Source: Rebecca billardiae RCC1528 (Eukaryota > Protista > Haptophyta). From it: a stretch of 64,000 nucleotides of DNA. Positions 1 through 12,368 of the stretch are shown piece by piece; position 1 is the first letter of the stretch; each line of letters begins with the position of its first letter. The notes beneath the pieces are model-generated. The model was given only the letters and a program-made list of their open reading frames with translations. It ran no database searches and was not told where the DNA came from. Both the position numbers and the translations under genes were made by a program. Location: positions 124,001 through 188,000 of the forward strand of contig OZ251238.1 in assembly GCA_965240325.2 (NCBI GenBank), written 5' to 3'.

Positions 1-521
1 CGCGCCCGCCGCCGCCGCCGCCGCGCGCGCGCCGCCGCCGCCGGTTCGGCCGTCGAGCGCGCGGCGCGTGCCGCCGAGTGCGCGCAGCGCGGCCGCGCGC
101 GCCGCGAGCGCGGCATCGGCCGCCGCGTCGTCCGCGCCCGCCGCCTCGGCGTGGGCGAGGGCGGCGGCGGCGGCGGCGGCGGCGGGCGGCGCGCGCCACA
201 GCGGCGCGCGCGCCGCCGCCCACGCCGCCGCCGCGCCCTCCGCGCGCCGCACCGCCGCGTCGGCCGCGCCGAGCGCCGCGGCGAGCGCGCCCGCCGCGTC
301 CGCGCACGCGGCCGCGAGCGCGCCGCCGTGCTCGGCGGCGGCGCCGCGCGCGCCGAGCGCGGCGGCGGCGGCGCGCGGGCCGCGGAGCACCCACCAGTGC
401 CGCGCCGGCCGCGCGCCGCCGTCCGCGCGCTCGCACTCGCACGCCGCCGCGCACGCCGCGCGCACCGCCGCCCAGAGCTGCGCGCGCACACACGGCGCGC
501 TCGGCCACAGCGCCGCGCACA

Positions 522-555
<34 letters not shown>

Positions 556-1807
556 CTCGGAGACGCGGAGGCGGACGCGCGCGCGCGGCGCGGCGTGGGC
601 CTGCGGCGGCAGCGCGGCCGGGCTGCCCCGCCCGCTCCCGCCGCCGCCGGCAGCAGCGCCGCCACCACCGCCGCCGCCCGGCGCCGCCGCCCACGCGCGC
701 AGCGCGCGCGCCGCGCGCCTCGCGAGCGCCGCGGCTAAGCGCGCGTCCGCAGCCGCGGCGTAGGCGGCGGCGCCCGCCACGTTGGCGGCGGCGACGCGCT
801 CGACGGCGGCGCGCGCGGCGGCGGCGGCGGCGCGCGCGGTGGCGGCGGCGCACGCCCCGCCCCGCCCCTCGCCGCCCTCCTCCTCCGCCGCCGCCGCCGC
901 CTCCTCCTCCCCGCCGCCGCCGCCGCCGCCCTCCGCGTCCGCGCGCGCGTCCGCTCCGTCGATGGCCGCCAGCGCGCGCGCCAGCGCCGCCTCTGCGCCG
1001 AGCAGCTCGCGAGAGGCGGCGGCGTACGCGACGAGCGCGCGGCGGAGGCGCGCGGCGCACGCGCGCAGCGCCGCCGCGTCCGTCGGGCCCGCGCCCGCCG
1101 CCGCGCGCACCGCCGCGTGCGCCGCCGCCGCGTGCGGGCGCAGGTGGCGGCGCAGCGGCGGCGGCACGCGCGCGACGGCGGCCGCGCGCGCGTCGAGCGC
1201 GCCGCCGAGCTCGGCGGCGGCGGCGGCGAGCGGCGCCCACTCGGCGGCGGCGGCGGCGAGGGCGCGCGGCACGCCGCCCTCCGGCGCGCCCGCCCCCGCC
1301 GGCGCGTACCCCAGCCGCCCCAGCGCCTCCGCCTCGGCGGGCAGCGCCAGCAGCAGCGGCGGCAGCGCGGGGCACAGCCGCAGCCGCGCGCGGCCGCCGC
1401 CGCCGCGCGCGCGCGCCGCCGAGCCGCCACCGCCACCGTCCGCGCGCGCCCCCGCCGCCGCCTCGGCGGCGGCGCCGTCGGCAGTGCCGCCGGCCGCCGC
1501 GCCGGCGCTGCGCGCCGGCGGCGCGAGCTCGAGCACGGCGAGCGCCCGGCCGCGCGGCGGCGCCGCCAGCTCGCGCGCGGCCGCGGCCGCCCACGCGCCC
1601 ACGAGCGCCGCCGCGCGCGCGGCCGCGGCGGCGCGCAGCGCGGCCGCGTCGGCGAGCACGGCGCGCGCGGCGGCGTGCGCGCCGCACGACTCGCCGAGCG
1701 CGGCGCGCACGAGGCGCGCGCCCAGCTCGCCGCGCGCGCCGAGCGCGCGCGCGCGGCACACCGCCGCCGCCACCGGCGGCCAGCCGCGCGCGCCGCCCAC
1801 CGCGGCC

Positions 1808-1845
<38 letters not shown>

Positions 1846-3895
1846 CTCGGCGGCGGCGCCGCGGCCGAGCGCGGCGCGCGCGCGCCCGACCTCGGCGGCG
1901 GCGGCGCGGAGGAGCGCGCCCTCCGCGTCGGGCAGCGCGGCGCGCACGGCCGGGCGGCCGAGCGCGCCCGCCGCGCGCGCCAGCGCGCGCGCGCGCGCGC
2001 CGTCCGAGCCGCAGCGGCCGAGCGCGGCCGCGAGCGCCGCGGCGAGCGCGCCGTCGGCGCGCGCGCACGCGGCCGCGTGCGCGCGCGCCGCCGCCGCCCA
2101 GCGGCCGCCGTCGTCGGCGCCGAGCGGCGCGGCGGCGGCGGCGGCGAGCGCGGCCCACGCGCGGCCGAGCTCGGCGCCCACCGCGCCCGCGCCCTCGGCG
2201 CCCAGCGCGCCGCCGCGCGCCGCCGCCGCCACCGCCGCGTGCGCCGCCGCCGCCGCGCGCAGCTCGGCGGCGCGCCGCCCGAGCGGCCGCAGCGCGCGCG
2301 CGCCCGCCGCGCCCGCGGCCGGCGCGGGCTCGCGGCGCGCGCGCGCGGCGTCGGCGGCGGCGGCCTCGACGGCGGCGGCGGCGGCGGCCCACGCCGCCTC
2401 CACCCGCGCCGCCGCCGCGCACGCCGCGCCCAGCCCCGCGCCGGGCGCGCCGCCCTCTTCGAGCGCGGCGCGCAGCCGTGCGTGGCAGCGGCCGAGCAGC
2501 GCGCGCCCGAGCGCGGCCACGAGGGCGCACGCGCGCGCGGGCGGGTAGGAGGAGGCGCGGAGGCGCAGGCCGCCGAGCGCGCGCGCGACGGCGCACGCCG
2601 CCTCGCCGTCCGCCTCGAGCCCCGCCGCCGCGCCCTCGCCGCCCTCCACCGCGCCGCCGCCGCCGCCCTCGCCGCCCCCCGCCGCCCACGGCGGCGCGGG
2701 CGGCAGCGCGCTCAGCAGCGCCACGTGCGCGCCCGCCGCGCGCTGCGCACGGCGCGCGCCCTCCGTCGCCTCGGCGAGCGCGGCGAGCACCGTGTGCCGC
2801 CGCGCGCGCTGCAGCACCTCGCGCGCCGCGAGCACGCCTGCGCGCGCGGCGCCGTGGGCGCGCGCGTGAGCGCGGCGGCGCGGCGCGGCGCGGCGCGGCG
2901 CGGCGCGGCGCGGCGCGGCGCGCGGCGGCGGCGCGCGGCGGCGACGCGCGGCGGCGCGCGCGCGGCGCACCGTCGGAGGCGAGAAAGTCGCAGTGCGCGC
3001 CCAGCGCGTCCTCGGCGGCGCGCCAGAAGGGCAGCTCGTCCGCCACGCCGCAGCCCGCCAGCTCCGCCTCGCCGCCCTCGCCGCCCTCGCCGAGCGCGGC
3101 GAGCGCGCGCGCCCCCTCCGCCCAGCCCTCCGCCGCCGCGGCCGCGCTGTCCGCGAGGCGCTCGAGGCCGCCGCTGCCGGGCTGCGCGAGCGCGGCGTCG
3201 GCGAGCTCGGAGGAGCGGCGCGGGCGCGGCGGCGCGCCACCGCCCGCCTCGGCGCGCAGCGCCGCGAGCAGCGCGGGCGGCAGCTCGGCGCTCGGCGCGC
3301 GCACGGCCGCGCCGCCGCGCGCCGCGCTCGCCGCCGCGCCCAGCTCGGACAGCGCCGCGCGCACGGCCGCGCCGGGCGCGCGCGCGCGGCCGGCGGTCGG
3401 GCTGTGGTGCGCCGGGTGCTCCGCGTCGAGCAGCGCGCGCAGCGCCTCCTCCGCGTACGCGCGCACCGTCTCGAGCGCGCCGCCATCGTGCGCGCAGCTC
3501 AGCAGCCGCAGCTGGGGACCGAGCGGCGCCGCGCACTCGAGCGGCGCAGAGCCCGCGCGCCGGACGAGCGCGAGCGCGGCGCGCACGCCGGGCGGGGGCG
3601 GGCCGGCGGGGAGGAGCTCGAGCGTCCCCTCCGGCGGCGCGCCGGGCGCGCCGCCGCCCTCGGCGCCGCGCGTGCCCAGCACGAGCGCGCGCGCGCCGCC
3701 GCGCGCGCGCGCAAACGCGCACAGCTGCTCGCGCGCGGCCGCGGGCTCGAGCGCCGCGCGGACGGCGGCGGGCGCGGCGCCGAGGAGCGGGGGCGCGGCG
3801 GCGCAGAGGAAGTCGGCGAGCGCCTCGGCGGCCTCGCCGTCCGGCCCGTCCGCGCCGTCGTCCGCCGTGGCGGGTTGCGGCTCCGCGGCCATCAT
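1..3895 (-). CDS. DYNC1H1: Cytoplasmic dynein-1 heavy chain, N-terminal tail (DHC_N1 region), highly divergent; runs off the left edge of the window
   Basis: Not in the ORF track as such. Minus-strand frame from ATG 3895/3892 with intron 2838-2970 (GT..CAG). Colinear matches to DHC1 as I recall it: ADELPFWRAAEDAL~LQEISFWLNLERAL; GVLAAREVLQRARRH~EVLLTLDILKHGKRF; LRASSYPPARVRALVAALGRAL~[30 protein letters not shown]~RPHIRGAI; PPVAAAV..LVRAALGE~PPVSGSI..RVEDVLGK. Confidence 0.8.
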
Positions 3896-4243
3896 CAGGC
3901 CGACCGCGCGGCAAGCCTGCTTGCCACTGGCCTTTTGGGCGGCCGCGCGGCGCCGACTCATCGTCATCAAGCGGGAGCACCGGTCATTCCGGAGCCATTT
4001 GCTGGAGTTTTGTTATTCATTCCACCGCCACGCGAATTGGGCTCATTAGATAGGCCAGTAATTACCCGCGTACTAAAGTAGCTCCGGCACGCGGAATGAG
4101 CCCACCGACAATTCGATCATAGTCATTTCATGGATAGTGCCTGGCGACCATGTGCACAGCTTACCCGGCTGGCGACGAGCGCAGTGCTCGCGGCGCGGAG
4201 CGCAGAAGCGCCACACACCGCGCGCGCGCGCGGCCGCGCGCGC

Positions 4244-5047
4244 TCAGATGTGCCGCGCGTCGCGGTACGCCTTCTCCGTCGGCACGAGCTCGCGCCCGTC
4301 GTACCACGCGGCCACGGCCGGCAGCGACGCGACCGTCTTGCGCACGGCCTGCACGCGCGCGTACTTGGAGACCGCGTCGAGGGGCACGCCGTCCATCGCG
4401 CCGGAGAACGCGGAGGAGACGGAGCAGAAGAGCTGCAGGTCGCCGATCGTCAGCGCGCCGCCCACCGCGTGCCCGCCGCTGCCGTGCTGCCCCACGAACG
4501 CGTCCAGCTTGGCGAGCCACGCGGCGGCGGCGCCCGACTCGACGCTCTCCTTGCGCGCGGCCTCCTTCTCCGCGCCCTCGAGGCCCTTGCCCGCGTCGCG
4601 CAGCGCCGTCTGGAAGTCCTCGCACGCGCAGACCAGCTCGTCGCACCGCGCCGCCGCGAGCGGCTCGGCCGGGAGCAGCGCGGGGCTGATCAGCTTGGCG
4701 ACCAGCGAGAGGAGCGCGCCCTTCTGCGCGAGGACGGTGCCGTCGCGCAGCGTGAGCACGGGCAGCTGGCCCCACGGCGTGCTGGGCTTGCGCGCCGGCC
4801 ACTCCTGCGCCCGCCGTCGCGGCGCGCGGGGGCGCGCGAGGGCGGGGCGAGTGCGCGCGCGCGAATGCGTCGGCGCGCAATCGTCGCGGCGCCTGCGCGC
4901 GCGCGCGCGGCGCGGCGCGGGCCGCACCTCGCCCTTGATGCGCTCGTCGTTGAAGGGCACGCCGCCAATCACGAGGGCGAGGCGGATGGGCTCGCCGCGC
5001 CCCGCCAGCGGGAAGTAGGTGAGCGTGCAGTCGTCGAGGATCGACAT
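4244..5047 (-). CDS. Glutathione S-transferase (sigma-like)
   Basis: MSILDDCTLTYFPLAGRGEPIRL..., TPWGQLPVL, LTIGDL; one in-frame intron 4805-4927. Confidence 0.93.
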   Translation of the reverse strand: MSILDDCTLTYFPLAGRGEPIRLALVIGGVPFNDERIKGEVRPAPRRARARRRRDDCAPTHSRARTRPALARPRAPRRRAQEWPARKPSTPWGQLPVLTLRDGTVLAQKGALLSLVAKLISPALLPAEPLAAARCDELVCACEDFQTALRDAGKGLEGAEKEAARKESVESGAAAAWLAKLDAFVGQHGSGGHAVGGALTIGDLQLFCSVSSAFSGAMDGVPLDAVSKYARVQAVRKTVASLPAVAAWYDGRELVPTEKAYRDARHI

Positions 5048-5468
5048 GGCGCGCGGGCGGCGGCGGGCGCGTGTTCGGACGTCTTCGGCGACTGGTCTCG
5101 GCCGGGCTGCCGCGAAGGAAGACTCGTAGTTTCGCGCCCGCCTTGCGTCCGGGCGGCCGCAACTTGCCGAAGACTCCGGGAGTGTTGTGCAGGGGCGGCC
5201 CGGGCAGCTGGGCAGTTCAGGCTGTTGATAGGCCGCGGCCCTCCCGGAGCGGTACTCGTCCACTATCGGAGACGTAGTCAGCTGCAAGGGCGCCGCTGAG
5301 AACTAGTTGTTGTTAGAGTGCAGCAGCGAAGTGTCCTGATGGGTGCCGCGGCGGCAGCAGCTGCCAGCTGGTGAGGAGCCCCGTGTCGGGGCTGGTGGTA
5401 TCAGCCCCGTCGGCACGCAGCTCGGCGTGCGCACGCGCCCGTCCGCCGGCGGACGCGCGCGCGCGCGC

Positions 5469-8304
5469 ATGGCGGAGCCGACGGGCCCCCTCCGGCACAT
5501 CGGCCCCGCCGAGCTCGGCGCGCACGGCACGCGCGACTCGTGCTGGCTGCTCATCAACGGGCACGTGTTCGACGCGACCTCCTTCCTCGACGAGCACCCG
5601 GGCGGCGCGAGCGTGCTGCTCGAGCACGCGGGGATGGACGCGACGCAGGCGTTCGTCTCGCTACACTCGCCGCGCGCGTACAAGATGCTCGGCGCGCGGC
5701 GCGTCGGCGTGTACGACCCCGCCGCCCTCGCGCCCCCGCCCGCGCCCGACGGCGCGCCGAGCGCGCTCGGCGCCGCCGGCGCCGCCGCGCCGACGGCGGC
5801 GGCGACGGCGGCGGCGGTGCCGAGCACGGCGGCGGGCGCCGAGGCGGCGGCGAGCACGCGCGCGCGCGACGCCGCCGCGGCGGGCGTCTTGGCCCAGGTC
5901 GACGCGCCGCCCTCCGCCGCCGCCGCTGCCGCCGCCGCCGCCGCGCCGCGCTGCGCGTACGCCGCCGCCGCCGCCAACGCCGACGCGGACGCGGACGCGC
6001 CGGGCGGCGGCTCGGCGGGCGGCGGCGCGTGCTGCCCGACGCCGCCGCCCGATGCGAGCGGCAGCTCGTCCTCGAGCAGCCCGCACTCGCACCCGTGGGC
6101 CGCGCCGCCCGCGACGGGCTGCCCGGCCGGCGGCGGCGCGGCCGCGTGCGCCGACGCGGCCGGCGGCGGCGGCGGCTGCGCGGCGGGCGTGCTGGGCTCG
6201 GGCTCGGCGGCGGGCTCGGCGGCGGGCGGCGCGTGCGCCGCCGCCAGGCCGGGCGCCGCGTGCGCCGAGCCGAGCGCGTGCGCGCAGCCCGTGCACTGCC
6301 TCACCGGCGGCGTGCGCACCGAGGCGCCGCCCTCGACCGCGCTGTGGGCGGTGGGCGAGCGCGGCTTCCTGCCTGTGCGCGACCCGCTGGCGGAGCTGCC
6401 GGGGCCGTGGGGCGTGCTCGTCGAGCTCTCGCGCGAGATCCCGATGATGTGCGCCGACGGCTCCGCGCGCGAGGTGCTCGACGCGCACGCGCCCGCGCTC
6501 GGCGCCCTGTGCGGCGCCGCGCCCCTGCGGCTGCTGGCCACGGATGACGCGCTCGAGCGCGCGCACTCGCTGTACGGGTACCTGGCGAGCGCGTACATCA
6601 ACGGCAGCAGCGCACCGGGCGGCGGCGGCGCGGGGCACGCGAGCCCGGCCGCGGGCGCCGCGGACGGCTGCCCGTTCCACCCGCAGCCGCCGCCGCAGCC
6701 GCAGCCGCCGCCGGCGTGCGCGGGCGGTGGCGGCGGCGGCGGCGGCGTGTGCGTGGGCGGCGGCGTGGGCGTGGGCGTGGGCGGCTGCGTGGGCGGCTGC
6801 CCGTCGTGCGGCTCTGGCGGGCAGCGCGGCGTGCCCGACGGGCTGCGCTCCGCCGAGCGCGCGCAGCGGCCGAGCTCGCTGCCCGCGTACCTGTGCGTGG
6901 GCTGGGCCGCGGTCGCCGCGCGCCTCGGCCGCCGCCCCACGCTCGACTACGCCGCGTGCGTGCTCTACAACTGGTCGCGCGTCTCGCGCGCCGGCCCGAT
7001 CACGATGGCCAACGTGCGGCTGCTCAACCGCTTCACGGGGCTGGTGGACGAGGAGTGGTTCTTCAAGACGCACATCGTGATCGAGAGCGAGGCGGCGGAG
7101 GCGGTGCAGGCGCTGGCGCGCGGGCTCGACGCGATGGAGGGCCCCGTCGACGCGGAGGCGCTGCTGCTCTCTCTGCGCGCGCTCGAGGGCGCGCTCTGGC
7201 GCGTGGCGCGCGTGTGCCTGCCCATCATGTTCGAGCGGGCGGAGGGGCAGGGCGCGCTGTGCGACTACTACGTGTTCTACCACCGGCTGCGCCGCTTCAT
7301 CTCGGGGTGGGACGCCACGTACGAGGGCGTCTCCGACGCTCCGCTCTCGCTCTCCGGCCCGTCGGGCGCCATGTCGGCGCTGCTGCCCACCATCGACGCG
7401 TTCCTCGGCATCAGCATGTCCAACGACCAGCTGGGCACGCTGCTGGCGGACTTCGAGTCGTACATGCCCAGGGCGCACGCGGAGTTCATCGGGCGCGTGC
7501 GCAGCCGCACGCCGCCCGTGCGCACGTACATCTGCGAGGCGATGGCGGCGCAGCTGCGCGCGGAGGCGGACGCGGCGGCGGCGCAGCAGCCGCAGCCGCC
7601 GCCGCCGCCGCCGCAGCACGCGGGCGGCGCGGGCGGCGCGGGCGGCGCGGGCGGCGCGGCGGGCGGCGCGGCCGCGGCGCTCGGCGCGGCGACGCCGCCG
7701 CTGCAGCCCGCCTCGCCCGCGCCGCCGGGCGGCGTGCCCGGCGGCGGGCCCTCGGCCGACGAGCCCGCCCTCCCCCTCCGGCGCGCACCCGCCGGCGCCG
7801 CGCCCGACGCATCCGCGCCCGACGGCGCGCGCGGCGCAGACGCGCACGCGCTCGTGTCCGCTTACAACGAGTGCATCAACCGCGTGCTCGACTTCCGCTG
7901 GCGGCACTTCCAGCTCGTGCAGAAGTACATCCTCGACCAGGCGCGCGCGGAGCAGCGGGACAGCGAGCAGCGGGACAGGGGGCACCACGCGCAGCCGACG
8001 GAGGCGCCGCAGCAGCCGCCGCCGCAGCCGCCGCCGCCGCAGCCGCCGGGCTCCTCCTCCGCCGAGGGCGCGCCACCGCCGCCCGGCTGCCCGCTGCGCG
8101 GCACGGGCGGCACCCCCGCGTTCGAGTACCTGCACCAGCACATCCACGACACCGAGGTGGCGCGCATACGCAGGCCCGCGCCGCCGCCGCCGCCGCAGGG
8201 GGGCGCGTGCTCCGCGGCCGCGTCGCCGCTCGCCGGGCCGGCGGGCGCGGGCGCGCTCGGCGCGGGCGGCGGCGCCGCCGCCGCCGCGGCGGACGGCGCC
8301 AAGC

Positions 8305-8342
<38 letters not shown>

Positions 8343-8919
8343 GACGGCTCGGCCGCGCTCGGCGCGGACGGGCGCTGCCTGCCGTGCGTGCCGCCGGGCC
8401 CGTTCGCGCTCTCGGCCGCGGACGGCGCGCGCATGTTCTCGCACGACTCCGCGCCCTCCGAGCTGTGGTCCGCGTGCGGGCCCAACGGTCTGCTGCCCAC
8501 AGCGCACCCGCTGCTGTGGCGCAGCGCCGCCGACGCGCCCGGCGGCGCGGCCGGGTTTGGCGTGCTGGTGAGCCTCTCGCGCGCCGTGCCCGCCATGTCC
8601 GCGGGCACGGGGCTCTTCAAGCAGGCGGTGGAGGCGGCGCTGCCCACGCTCGCGCACTGCGTCACGCTGCTGCGCGCGGGCGCGCTCACGCGCGCGCACG
8701 AGCTCGAGCGCGCGCGCTCGCTGTGCGCGCACATCGCCGCCGCGTACCGCCCGTCGGCGCAGGCGCTGCAGCGGCCGCTCGAGGCGCGCGCCGAGCTGCT
8801 GCCGTCGGACTGGGCGGCGCTCGCCGCGCGCGACGACGCGGCCGAGGCCGCGGCCGAGGCGGAGGACGGCGCGCTCGGCGGCGCGGCCGCGCCGGGCGAC
8901 GCGCCGCCCGCGCCCGCGC

Positions 8920-8956
<37 letters not shown>

Positions 8957-10740
8957 GCCGCCGCCGCCGCCGCCGCCGGGCCCGCTCGGCGAGGGCGAGC
9001 TGCCGCCGCCGCTGCGCGAGCTCTTCGCCGTGCTCTCGCGCCGCGTCGGCCGCCCCGCGCGCCTCGACCACTGCGACACGACGCTGTACAACTGGGAGCT
9101 CACGGCCGAGCAGGGGGCGGCAGCGCAGCGGGCGGCGGCGCGCGGCCACGAGGGCGGCGGGTTTGAGGTGGTGAGCCTGGCCAACGCGCACCGGCTGCGG
9201 CTGGTCTGCCGCTTCCTCGCCATCCCGGAGGAGGTGCGCGCACGCCACGGATGCACCCGCGCGCGCGCCATGCGCACGCGCACGTCCGCACGCGCGCGTG
9301 CGGGCGGGCGCGCCACCGCCCCGACTGACGTCCGACCGCGCGCCTGCGCCGCCGGCTGCGCGCGCGCCGCCCTCCGCGCCTCCCTCCGCGCCTCCCTCCG
9401 CCTCCTGCAGGACGACTTTTGGCGGCTGCACGTCGTGCTGGAGGCGGAGGCGCGCGCGCTCGTCCACGCGGCCTCGCTCGGGCAGGCCGCCATGCACGCG
9501 CACGACACGCGCGGGCTCGTCGGTGCGCGCAGCACCGCGCGCGCAGCACCGCGCGCGCAGCACCGCGCGCACGGCGCGGGCCGCGGCGGGGCTGACGGCT
9601 CGGGCCGCCCCCCGCGTGCGCGCGTGCGCAGCCGCCCTGGACGCGTTCGGGCAGGGCCTGGCGACGCTCAACGAGGCGCACCAGCAGCTGGGCGAGCACG
9701 GCGGCCGGCGCGACGTCGTGCTTGCGCGCCGGCTGCGCCCCTTTCTGCTCTCGGGCTCGAGCACGCAGCAGGACATGCAGATCGGCGCCATCTTCTACAC
9801 CGCGCGGTGCGCGCGCCGCGCGGGCAGGGGGCGGGCAGGGAGCGGGCGCGCCGCGCACAGCGGGGCGCGCACCGCGCAGCCGTGCGCGCGGCCGGACTGC
9901 GCGCCCGCTCACGCGCGCGCCTCGCGCCGCGCCCTCCTCGCGCCTCGGCGCCTCTCACCAGCTCCGCCATCCTGCCGCTGTGCCTGGCCTTCCTCGGCGT
10001 GCGCCCCGCCGCCGGGCTGGAGCCGCACCCGCTGCTGCGCGCGCTCACCAAGGCGCAGCGCAGCATGCCCGCGCCGCACCGCGCGCTGCTGAGCTGCCTG
10101 CAGCGGCCGGGCGGCGGGGACGTGCGCGCCTACCTGCACGCGATCGCGCACCGCACGCCCGTGCACGAGCTCGCGCTGCTCGAGGCGAGCTTCAACGGAT
10201 GCGTCGAGGTGCGCGCTCGCGCCGGCGCGGAGCGAGGCCGAGCGCGCGCGCGCGGGGCGGACGTCGCGCGGCGCGGCGCGCGGCGCCGCCGGCTCTCACG
10301 CCGCCGCCGCCGCCCCCGCCCCGCGCGCGCTCGCGGCTGTGCCGCGCCCCGCGCCGCGCCGCGCCGCGCCGCCCTCCCGGCCGCAGGAGCTGCTCCGCTT
10401 CTGCTCGCGCCGCTCCAACCTCGTGTGCCGCGCGCTGCCGCACATCGCCGAGTCGTTCCGCGAGTACTACCACAAGCAGCTGGAGGGCAGCATCCACCAG
10501 GCGCGGTGCAAGCTGCTGCTGCAGCGCAGGCTGGGGCCGGGGCAGGGCGGCGCGGGGGGGCACGCGGCGGACGGCGGCGCGCGCGCGGCGGGGCAGGGCG
10601 CGCCCGCCACGCACGGCGCGGAGGAGGCGGGGGGCTCGCTGCCCGCCTCGCCGCGCGCGGCCGCGCTCGGCGACGGCGCGCCGCCGAGCGCGCCGCCCGC
10701 GTGCGGCGAAGGCGCACCGAGGCGCAACACGAGCCAGTAG
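5469..10740 (+). CDS. Cytochrome b5 + indoleamine 2,3-dioxygenase + second degenerate IDO-like domain fusion
   Basis: b5: CWLLINGHVFDATSFLDEHPGG..GMDATQAFVSLHS. IDO domain 1: LDYAACVLYNW, EEWFFKTHIVIE, FYHRLRRFISGW, SGPSGAMS, YMPRAH, FRWRHFQLVQKYI, GTGGT. IDO-like domain 2: LDHCDTTLYNW, FWRLHVVLE, SMPAPHR. Predicted introns 9234-9410, 9523-9631, 9807-9961, 10209-10386. Confidence 0.88.
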
Positions 10741-12368
10741 GGAGCCGCGCCGGACCCACCCAGCGCGCGGCAGCAGCTGCAGGGCAGGGCTCGCTCGCGC
10801 GGTGCCGGCCCAAGCGCGCACGGCGCCTCCGGGCCGCGTCGGCGGTGCGGCTGCCGACCCCGCCTGCCCAGCCCTCGCCCGGCGGCCGCCCTGGAGCCGC
10901 GCGGCCGGCGCACTGCGGCCCCCGACCCACGCGAGGACGCGGGCCCGGCGCGCGCCGCCGGGGTCCGACTCCACCACCGCCACCGTCACCGGGCCATGCG
11001 GCCCTCCGCCCGCGGCGAATGGCGGCGGCAGCCGCCGCTGCCGCCTGCGGCCGCCAGCATCGTTGCAATCGTCCGCCGTAGTCTATATCTGCTATCCGCA
11101 TCGTCGTCGCCGCGGATATATCAGCATACTGCTACGCAGTATAGTGCACATGCATACAGTGAACAAAATAATACGGGAATAGTATCGTCACTGTATACAG
11201 TATAGGCGCGTATTCCGTGACTGTCCGACACGAGCGAGCCGATTTTCGCGCGGGGAAATTCTCGCGCGGGCCGCACGAGCGCACAGAAGACGCTACGGTG
11301 GTCGCGCAGGCGCCTGGCGAGTGCCCAGGGCATGGGACTGCAACACCCCACCCAGCCTCCCCATCCCTCCGCCCCTCTCTGCCTCGCCGGGTTGCACGCG
11401 GCTGGCCGGTCCGACGTAGCTCGTGGACAGCCATTCGTGAGCGTGGGGCCCTGCTGCTCAGTGCGGCGATGCGGCGAGGCGAAGCGGCACGTACGATGGC
11501 GCATCTTACTCCAAAGGCAGTCTGCTGCCAGCACAACCGCCCTCGCCGGAGTGCCTGGTCGTCACCTTCGTCGTGTGCACAGACTGTTGCGCGCTGCCGT
11601 CCACAAGCGTCAGTTTGCACAGGCCTCGGCCGCGGAGCCATTCAAACACGCTCGTCCTCGACGAGGCGTGCGCGAGGCACCGCGCGAGCGCGGGAACGGC
11701 CCTTCCCAGCATAGTCCTGCACGGCCATCCACCTCGCCACAGCCTGCCATGGCAAACTCCTCCCCGCACGCAGTGCTCGCATGCCGCGTGCATCAAGTCG
11801 GTCGACTGAGTCACCTGGTAGAAGGTCAAGGGTGCACAGATATTTTCGACTGCGAGGAGAGGGCGGCGAGCACAGGCGCGCGGCGCCGTCCCGCGCTTCA
11901 TTGGGCTGTTCTAGACCAGTCGCGCGCCCGCGGCACCGCGCCCGCCCTCTCCGCTGCGCGTGCCACTCCATATGGCGCGCGCCCTCTCGGGCGATGCGAG
12001 AGTCGCCGTCGACGATGGCCATTATTTATATTAATATTTTTGCGGCCGATTCGTAGTTGCGGCCGCAATAACTACGAAAATATCACGTAGGCCCGATCGA
12101 CGCACTTATTACACTACGCTGCTGCTGATGACGATCGACTGTCGTAGTTGATATGATGCGCGTCTGGCGTCGATCGCCGGCCAGTGACGATGCTGTCACA
12201 CTCAGCAAAGCGCGCTGCTATCTGCCCAGGGCAAGGCGCACTGCGCCGCGCACCAGCGCCAGCAGCGCACACGCCTGGTACGCAGTAGCAGCGTGCTGCG
12301 CGCGCTGTCGTCCGTCGTGACTGGAAACAGCTTAACAGGGCGCGCTCCGCCGGCCGGCCGCGCGGCCC

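Follow-up and report, generated by a model that had tools for sequence, protein, structure and literature searches.

A cytochrome b5-IDO-pseudoIDO fusion gene in the haptophyte Rebecca billardiae and its relatives among marine protists

We find that a 64,000-nucleotide stretch of the genome of the haptophyte Rebecca billardiae RCC1528 (assembly GCA_965240325.2, contig OZ251238.1, positions 124,001 to 188,000 of the forward strand; hereafter the window, by which we mean the whole stretch, with positions counted from its first letter) carries a single plus-strand gene of ~1550 codons, at 5469-10740, that encodes a cytochrome b5 (b5) domain, followed by an IDO domain (D1) and then a second, IDO-like domain (D2). 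Sequence comparisons show this b5-IDO-pseudoIDO arrangement to be of ancient origin and widely distributed among marine protists. We found no description of such a fusion in searchable literature, and to that extent the initial annotation of this DNA was right to present the architecture as uncharacterised, but the arrangement is neither unique to this genome nor rare, since 28 of 56 relatives share it and it is present in public databases under the name ‘Ido1’. We consider it probable that the b5 domain, supplied by a separate reductase, keeps the haem of D1 ferrous, that D1 cleaves tryptophan, and that D2 assists D1 in a structural or regulatory role, without a haem of its own.

Domain anatomy

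The domains and their diagnostic residues are placed as follows, where matches to hidden Markov models (HMMs) of the family are given with independent E-values (iE):

5508-5714, plus strand: Cyt-b5 haem-binding domain (Pfam PF00173, 73.4 bits, cut-off 23.7, E 1.6e-20)
5595-5597, plus strand: b5 haem ligand His of HPGG, residue 43 of the protein
5664-5666, plus strand: b5 haem ligand His of SLHS, residue 66 of the protein
5718-6299, plus strand: b5-D1 linker, 194 codons, Ala/Gly/Pro-rich, read as coding and not as intron
6300-8174, plus strand: D1, in three homologous blocks (6300-6608, 6858-7553, 7842-8174)
7071-7073, plus strand: distal-pocket His of D1 (FFKTH), a column invariant in a 30-sequence alignment
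7290-7292, plus strand: substrate-carboxylate Arg of D1 (first R of LRRFISGW), paired with the Arg in FYAGIRIFLSGW of human IDO2
7905-7907, plus strand: proximal haem-ligand His of D1 (FRWRH), whose counterpart in human IDO2 is the LRSYH His
8100-8114, plus strand: GTGGT loop of D1, in register with the human IDO1/IDO2 alignment
8448-9233, plus strand: N-terminal part of D2, within exon 1 (D2 HMM positions 7-196 of 434, iE 6e-31)
10411-10413, plus strand: Arg in place of the proximal His of D2 (LLRFCSRRSNLV), in exon 5

A b5 domain with both haem ligands and a complete IDO domain had been claimed from inspection of the sequence, and both claims are borne out by profile searches. The Pfam Cyt-b5 match covers residues 56-124 of the open reading frame (ORF) that starts at 5343, and the columns of the two ligand histidines are conserved among b5-bearing homologs. 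D1 scores 198.8 bits (E 1.7e-58) with Pfam IDO (PF01231), whose cut-off is 26, and the family D1 HMM recovers its three blocks with iE 5.5e-22, 6e-97 and 9.5e-27; the domain is interrupted by two in-frame low-complexity inserts (6603-6842 and 7533-7844) that keep codon periodicity. In phmmer alignments with human IDO1 and IDO2, FYHRLRRFISGW of D1 is aligned to FYAGIRIFLSGW, and the substrate Arg, the proximal His and GTGGT all fall in register with the human proteins. The proximal His column is nearly invariant across the family, the Gly-Ser-Ala segment that lies over the haem (GPSGAMS) is present, and none of the 53 invariant columns of the 30-sequence alignment is altered in exon 1 of the window gene, while 41 of the 43 near-invariant ones are preserved there. 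Judged by its sequence, D1 holds every residue expected of an active IDO.

Human IDO1 and IDO2 are ~24-26% identical to the window D1, with which they have in common the haem-ligand His, the substrate Arg, the Gly-Ser-Ala segment and the GTGG loop. A common fold is predicted for P0001, the closest full-length homolog, of which an AF2 model was made with the family alignment; the mean pLDDT of the model is 75.8 and its pTM 0.69, with the b5 domain, D1 and D2 confident and the linkers disordered. In a fold search with the D1 part of this model (residues 155-542), human IDO2 and IDO1 (e.g. PDB 2D0T, 7A62, 9UYY) were matched with Z ~43 and an rmsd of ~2.1 A over ~365 residues. The mammalian proteins differ in being single-domain enzymes of ~400 aa that lack both the b5 domain and the tandem copy. 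They differ also in the distal pocket, where IDO1 has Ser and IDO2 has Thr whereas the b5-IDO family has His; by our own reading of the human numbering, we take the FFKTH His to occupy the position of Ser167 of IDO1. A His at this site may destabilise the ferrous-oxy state of human IDO1, but a literature search on such a substitution (S167H) found no paper.

The initial annotation was also correct in describing the gene as a triple fusion ending in a pseudo-IDO. An HMM of 434 positions, built from the second domains of homologs (excluding P0009_D2, for reasons given below), spans positions 7-421 over 8448-9233, 9414-9527, 9589-9801, 9960-10235 and 10387-10536, and matches these five exon pieces with iE between 6e-31 and 3.4e-6; the same model matches D1 of the window with iE 1.1e-38, and, conversely, the D1 HMM matches the D2 pieces at 7.4e-8 to 1e-3. 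Pfam alone returned nothing at E <= 0.01 on the two in-frame D2 exon pieces searched singly. The D2 of the window gene has Arg where the proximal His would stand and has no GTGG loop. The same loss is seen across the full-length homologs, in 16 of 17 of which the proximal His of D2 is replaced by Arg (the 17th, P0009, being aberrant), while GTGG is missing, GPSGAMS is degenerate, and the substrate-Arg column varies (R/K/H/G/E). D2 nevertheless keeps ~20 invariant or near-invariant positions, including the His of an EEW..H..LE.E block, and in the P0001 model its pLDDT lies mostly between 85 and 95 over residues 580-1003. On this evidence, D2 is best described as a conserved relative with a predicted IDO fold that lacks the haem-ligating His and the GTGG loop.

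Gene structure

The gene is composed of five exons:

5469-9233, plus strand: exon 1, 1255 codons, encoding b5, linker, full D1, linker and the N-terminal 45% of D2
9234-9410, plus strand: intron 1, 177 nt, GTGCGCGC...CAG, donor GTGCGCGC at 9234, a multiple of 3 and stop-free
9411-9522, plus strand: exon 2, the D2 DDFWRLHVVLEAE block (D2 HMM 198-235, iE 3.7e-8)
9523-9631, plus strand: intron 2, 109 nt, GTGCGCGC...CAG
9632-9806, plus strand: exon 3, the D2 RRLRPFLLSG block, in a shifted frame (D2 HMM 220-288, iE 3.4e-6)
9807-9961, plus strand: intron 3, 155 nt, GTGCGCGC...CAG
9962-10208, plus strand: exon 4, D2 (D2 HMM 291-382, iE 3e-15)
10209-10386, plus strand: intron 4, 178 nt, GTGCGCGC...CAG
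10387-10740, plus strand: exon 5, the end of D2, a low-complexity tail and the TAG stop (D2 HMM 374-421, iE 6.7e-13)

The ends proposed at the outset, 5469 and 10740, are exact (ATG at 5469, TAG at 10738-10740), and the joined exons, on which length, phase and stops were computed, give a coding sequence of 4653 nt, or 1550 codons, with zero internal stops. All four introns open with the identical octamer GTGCGCGC and close with CAG. The uninterrupted frame that had been claimed for b5 and IDO is real and takes in the initial 45% of D2 as well (5469-9233), but it goes no further, as four introns follow: a 1912-aa open frame (5343-11081, plus strand) carries both Pfam Cyt-b5 and Pfam IDO, yet past 9233 it reads through introns, and the true D2 continues in four further exons with two frame changes. 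ORF finders pass straight through intron 1 because it is a stop-free multiple of three; its GC content is flat by phase (0.80/0.81/0.90), and homologs skip this stretch.

We rejected the long open frame as evidence for the gene, on account of a 1376-aa ORF over the same DNA in antisense and of the real intron that is itself in frame and stop-free; at 80% GC, with an ORF of that length on the opposite strand, a long stop-free frame is weak evidence. Codon composition is more informative. Only 21 of the 1255 third codon positions of 5469-9233 are A or T, and third-position GC is 0.96-0.99 in b5, linker and D1 versus 0.86-0.90 at the corresponding phase of the four introns, which show no consistent phase pattern. 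The b5-D1 linker has GC of 0.80/0.87/0.99 at codon positions 1/2/3 (chi-square p 3e-8), and all four low-complexity stretches of exon 1 (5718-6299, 6603-6842, 7533-7844 and 8160-8447), which have no counterpart in compact homologs, keep codon periodicity (chi-square p 3e-8 to 7e-3). Consequently, a single coding exon runs from b5 through the 194-codon linker and D1 to the end of the first 45% of D2. The protein start leads directly into the b5 domain; neither a signal peptide nor a membrane anchor is obvious when the translation is read by eye, and the encoded product is predicted to be a soluble protein of ~1550 residues.

Relatives and evolutionary history

A word search that took the D1 core as query yielded 56 proteins, of which 28 carry both PF00173 and PF01231. 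Among these 28 are complete ORFs of MMETSP and EukProt transcripts and many transcript-sized contigs of ~3.2-3.5 kb. One compact homolog is a b5-IDO transcript ORF of 614 aa. Homologs of 1035-1089 aa, some of them complete transcript ORFs, are colinear with the b5 domain, the three D1 blocks and the five D2 pieces of the window gene, two of these D2 pieces lying in another frame in the homolog alignment. Since many distant marine protists share this domain order, in some cases on complete transcript ORFs, the fusion is a selected one and not an accident of gene modelling. The D1 of each of the 17 full-length b5-bearing homologs has the FFKTH block, the Arg site, GPSGAMS and DFRWxH; GTGG is present in all 17 by selection, and a few b5-bearing proteins of the wider set of 56 are without it. 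Across the 56 relatives GTGG occurs at most once per protein, and always in D1.

Among the relatives are proteins of dinoflagellates, the ‘Ido1’ entries being from Symbiodiniaceae. The NCBI entries automatically named ‘Ido1’ from Symbiodinium sp. CCMP2456 (CAE6912687.1) and CCMP2592 (CAE7573242.1), an unnamed product in Cladocopium goreaui, an Effrenium voratum accession that sits within the P0030 cluster, and an MMETSP1110 transcript have the same b5-IDO-pseudoIDO order in ~1035-1045 aa, with the same D1 motifs, the same His-to-Arg replacement in D2, and a D1 that is 45-50% identical to that of the window. Shorter or partial b5+IDO gene models are found in Symbiodinium natans, S. necroappetens and Prorocentrum cordatum. 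No functional study of the dinoflagellate ‘Ido1’ entries was found, their names being automatic. These proteins differ from ours in being compact, without long Ala/Gly/Pro inserts, and the window protein is ~500 residues longer; the spacing between b5 and D1 in compact homologs is only ~20-25 residues. The window gene is therefore an unusually long member of its family, by virtue of its low-complexity inserts.

A quick IQ-TREE analysis recovers a D1 clade (SH-aLRT 95) and a D2 clade (SH-aLRT 97), with P0009 apart. The D1 and D2 subtrees mirror each other, D2 branches being longer than D1 branches, and this mirrored topology points to descent of both domains from one ancient internal duplication, followed by joint inheritance. 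Tandem forms without b5 occur in pelagophytes: the IDO of Aureococcus anophagefferens (EGB06600.1 / F0YEC4, ~975 aa) consists of an IDO and a pseudo-IDO that appear to derive from the same duplication, and differs in that Pfam shows no Cyt-b5 domain. Both of its halves nest inside b5-bearing clades, and b5 was therefore probably lost in the Aureococcus lineage. The quick tree places single-domain bacterial-type IDOs of ~385-400 aa (P0046, P0050, P0052, P0054, P0055) as the sister group of the D1 clade; they differ in having neither b5 nor a second domain, while GTGG is present in all five, and P0046 and P0054 have a distal His (FVTVH, FILVH) and a proximal FRxxH, as in D1.

Two further observations concern individual relatives. 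A genomic contig from a closer relative (69% GC, with 74-83% DNA identity to the window gene in conserved blocks) likewise joins b5 to the first piece of D1 within a single ORF, and its D1 is split (positions of that contig: 1142-1292, 1528-1799, 1954-2168, 2428-2754, 3056-3204) where that of the window is continuous, which suggests intron gain or loss within D1 between close relatives. The second domain of P0009 (1042 aa) is Ser-rich, forms an aberrant long branch, and was not alignable with other D2s; it is probably the product of a frameshifted or chimeric assembly.

Pathway context and proposed function

Kynureninase (352.8 bits in all, above the cut-off) and 3-hydroxyanthranilate dioxygenase (3-HAO, E 1.8e-61) are both encoded in the genome of R. 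billardiae, whereas neither tryptophan 2,3-dioxygenase (TDO, PF03301) nor the quinolinate synthase NadA (PF02445) was found there among the best candidates, to which scoring was limited. NAD is therefore apparently made via kynurenine, a route that needs a first enzyme of the IDO type. The only other IDO-like locus that we found in the genome lies on contig 3 (G000:C3:1685072-1686199; Pfam IDO, E 4.7e-49) and is closer to single-domain bacterial-type IDOs. We rejected it as a real tryptophan dioxygenase, as it reads FCDGY in place of FRxxH, and the 1.3 kb downstream of it yielded no C-terminal GTGG piece; it may be another pseudo-IDO, or its last exon may have escaped detection. For these reasons D1 has the only canonical IDO active site found in the genome, and, as far as can be judged from sequence, it is the best candidate for the first step of tryptophan-to-NAD synthesis.

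Fusion to b5 is an established design. In front-end fatty-acid desaturases, fatty-acid 2-hydroxylase, nitrate reductase, sulfite oxidase and flavocytochrome b2, the redox enzyme carries the b5 haem domain that serves it on a tether, in place of a diffusible partner. These enzymes differ from the present protein in that their catalytic partners are unrelated to IDO, and in that they use electrons at each turnover, whereas an IDO should need them for activation or rescue only.

The anatomy of the protein and its conservation are matters of observation; from them we infer an electron flow, a substrate and a role for D2, along the following lines. A separate NAD(P)H-cytochrome b5 reductase would give single electrons to the b5 domain, which would hand them to the haem of D1 and so hold it in, or restore it to, the active ferrous state. 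D1 would then cleave L-tryptophan, or a close indoleamine, to N-formylkynurenine, which would enter the kynurenine pathway to NAD, while D2, binding no haem in the canonical manner, would serve as a structural or regulatory partner of D1. The part assigned here to the b5 domain is the job that has been proposed for free cytochrome b5 with mammalian IDO: the suggestion in the initial annotation that b5 is an IDO reductant agrees with passages of PMC4191572, in which cytochrome b5 is put forward as the physiological reductant (citing Vottero 2006 and Maghzal 2008) and is stated to greatly improve the activity of mouse IDO2 in vitro. The fusion and human IDO1/IDO2 would both rely on an external one-electron reductant, for which cytochrome b5 is the proposed candidate. 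The description ‘self-reducing’, however, was too strong, as the protein has no FAD/NAD(P)H reductase domain and a separate b5 reductase is still required.

Alternative explanations

Several points weigh against a role for the fusion as a b5-maintained tryptophan dioxygenase. Enzymes with a permanently fused b5 are typically ones that consume electrons at each turnover, which IDO does not. The 194-residue low-complexity linker means that b5 is only loosely tethered in this protein, the Aureococcus relatives (~975 aa) show that b5 is dispensable in some lineages, and the absence of TDO from the genome is unproven. Moreover, haptophyte and pelagophyte IDOs fall in branches whose tested members turn over tryptophan very slowly (PMC4217691), and Ternes and Schoenknecht, who do not mention b5, doubt that haptophyte and stramenopile IDOs perform the first step (PMC4217691). 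An alternative, with gene and architecture unchanged, is that the fused b5 supplies electrons in each catalytic cycle, so that D1 is no classical dioxygenase but an electron-consuming indole or indoleamine oxygenase, of a monooxygenase-like or peroxygenase-like kind, or acts on another substrate (melatonin, serotonin or indole) in signalling or secondary metabolism and not in NAD synthesis. Such a reading would suit the precedent of front-end desaturases, fatty-acid 2-hydroxylase and nitrate reductase, whose b5 domains move electrons at each turnover, as well as the distal His of this IDO branch where mammalian IDO1 has Ser, and the grouping of D1 with single-domain IDOs. The tested members that show very low tryptophan activity in the haptophyte and pelagophyte branches are bacterial and fungal (PMC4217691), and a passage of the same paper that cites Yuasa et al. 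2011 reports very low tryptophan turnover for some bacterial IDOs, which may not be the same group as our P0046-type matches. Against a change of chemistry or substrate, D1 conserves the substrate-carboxylate Arg, GPSGAMS and the GTGG loop that hold L-tryptophan in IDO1, and the later kynurenine enzymes that are present need some first enzyme, with no TDO found to provide it; we therefore regard this alternative as unlikely, though far from negligible.

It is also conceivable that D2 is alive, binding haem or another cofactor through a ligand other than His, or offering an allosteric site for tryptophan or an effector, such that the protein would have two working IDO-type pockets. The retention of D2 since before the sampled b5-bearing and b5-less lineages split, its ~20 invariant or near-invariant positions (the EEW..H..LE.E His among them) and its high-confidence predicted fold would all be expected under such a hypothesis, but replacement of the proximal His by Arg in 16 of the 17 full-length homologs, deletion of the GTGG loop, degeneration of GPSGAMS, variation in the substrate-Arg column and the greater length of D2 branches relative to D1 branches make a second working pocket distinctly improbable. 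Finally, in DNA of this composition one might suspect the gene model itself: b5 and IDO could be separately transcribed neighbours, or 5718-6299 could be intergenic or intronic, with stop-poor sequence of 80% GC mimicking a fusion. Long stop-free frames are indeed common here (the 1376-aa antisense ORF included), at least one genuine intron (9234-9410) keeps the frame and contains no stop, and GTGCG-like strings occur within the linker. Yet the third-position GC of the linker, at 0.99 with a p of 3e-8, is set apart from the 0.86-0.90 and inconsistent phase pattern of the introns, a small intron in the linker would still leave b5 and IDO in one gene, the upstream neighbour (Met at 5047) is read from the opposite strand, and transcript-derived complete ORFs of other protists hold b5+IDO+IDO on one molecule. 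We consider an artefact of this sort very unlikely indeed.

Significance

The cellular reductant of IDO has been debated for decades, with superoxide, cytochrome b5 and others as contenders, and a b5-IDO fusion kept across distant protists constitutes independent evolutionary evidence for the b5 route. The fusion would also offer a natural single-polypeptide system, to be driven by NADH and b5 reductase without methylene blue or ascorbate, and D1 with D2 represents a conserved tandem of enzyme and pseudoenzyme inside the IDO family. For algae, in which the enzyme that opens the synthesis of NAD from tryptophan had been flagged as doubtful (PMC4217691), the fusion supplies a concrete candidate. 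A more far-reaching proposal, which we offer as speculative and would not expect to hold, is that b5-IDO-pseudoIDO is the missing first enzyme of the kynurenine route to NAD in haptophytes, and perhaps in dinoflagellates, or else an IDO-family oxygenase that draws electrons from b5 at each turnover, with D2 as a built-in regulator or scaffold. Were the latter version true, the use of b5 electrons in every turnover would be chemistry new to the IDO family; in either version, haem-less D2 would form an intramolecular enzyme/pseudoenzyme pair with D1.

Neighbouring features and base composition

A GST-like gene lies head to head with the b5-IDO gene at 4244-5287 on the minus strand, with its Met at 5047 (Pfam GST_C_3, E 2.2e-9). 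The start codons of the two genes are thus ~0.4 kb apart, and a shared bidirectional promoter region is possible; given the position and strand of the GST-like Met, there is no room for an additional N-terminal domain on the b5-IDO protein. The antisense 1376-aa ORF mentioned above (5661-9791, minus strand) is Arg/Ala/Gly-rich, overlies the b5-IDO gene, and is most likely an artefact that arises from third codon positions of close to 100% GC on the sense strand. The source assembly is eukaryotic, with 72 Mb in 41 contigs. Measured in steps of 2 kb, GC content ranges from 60 to 90% across the window and from 75 to 82% over the b5-IDO gene, and in the first 4 kb (1-4000) it reaches 87-90%.

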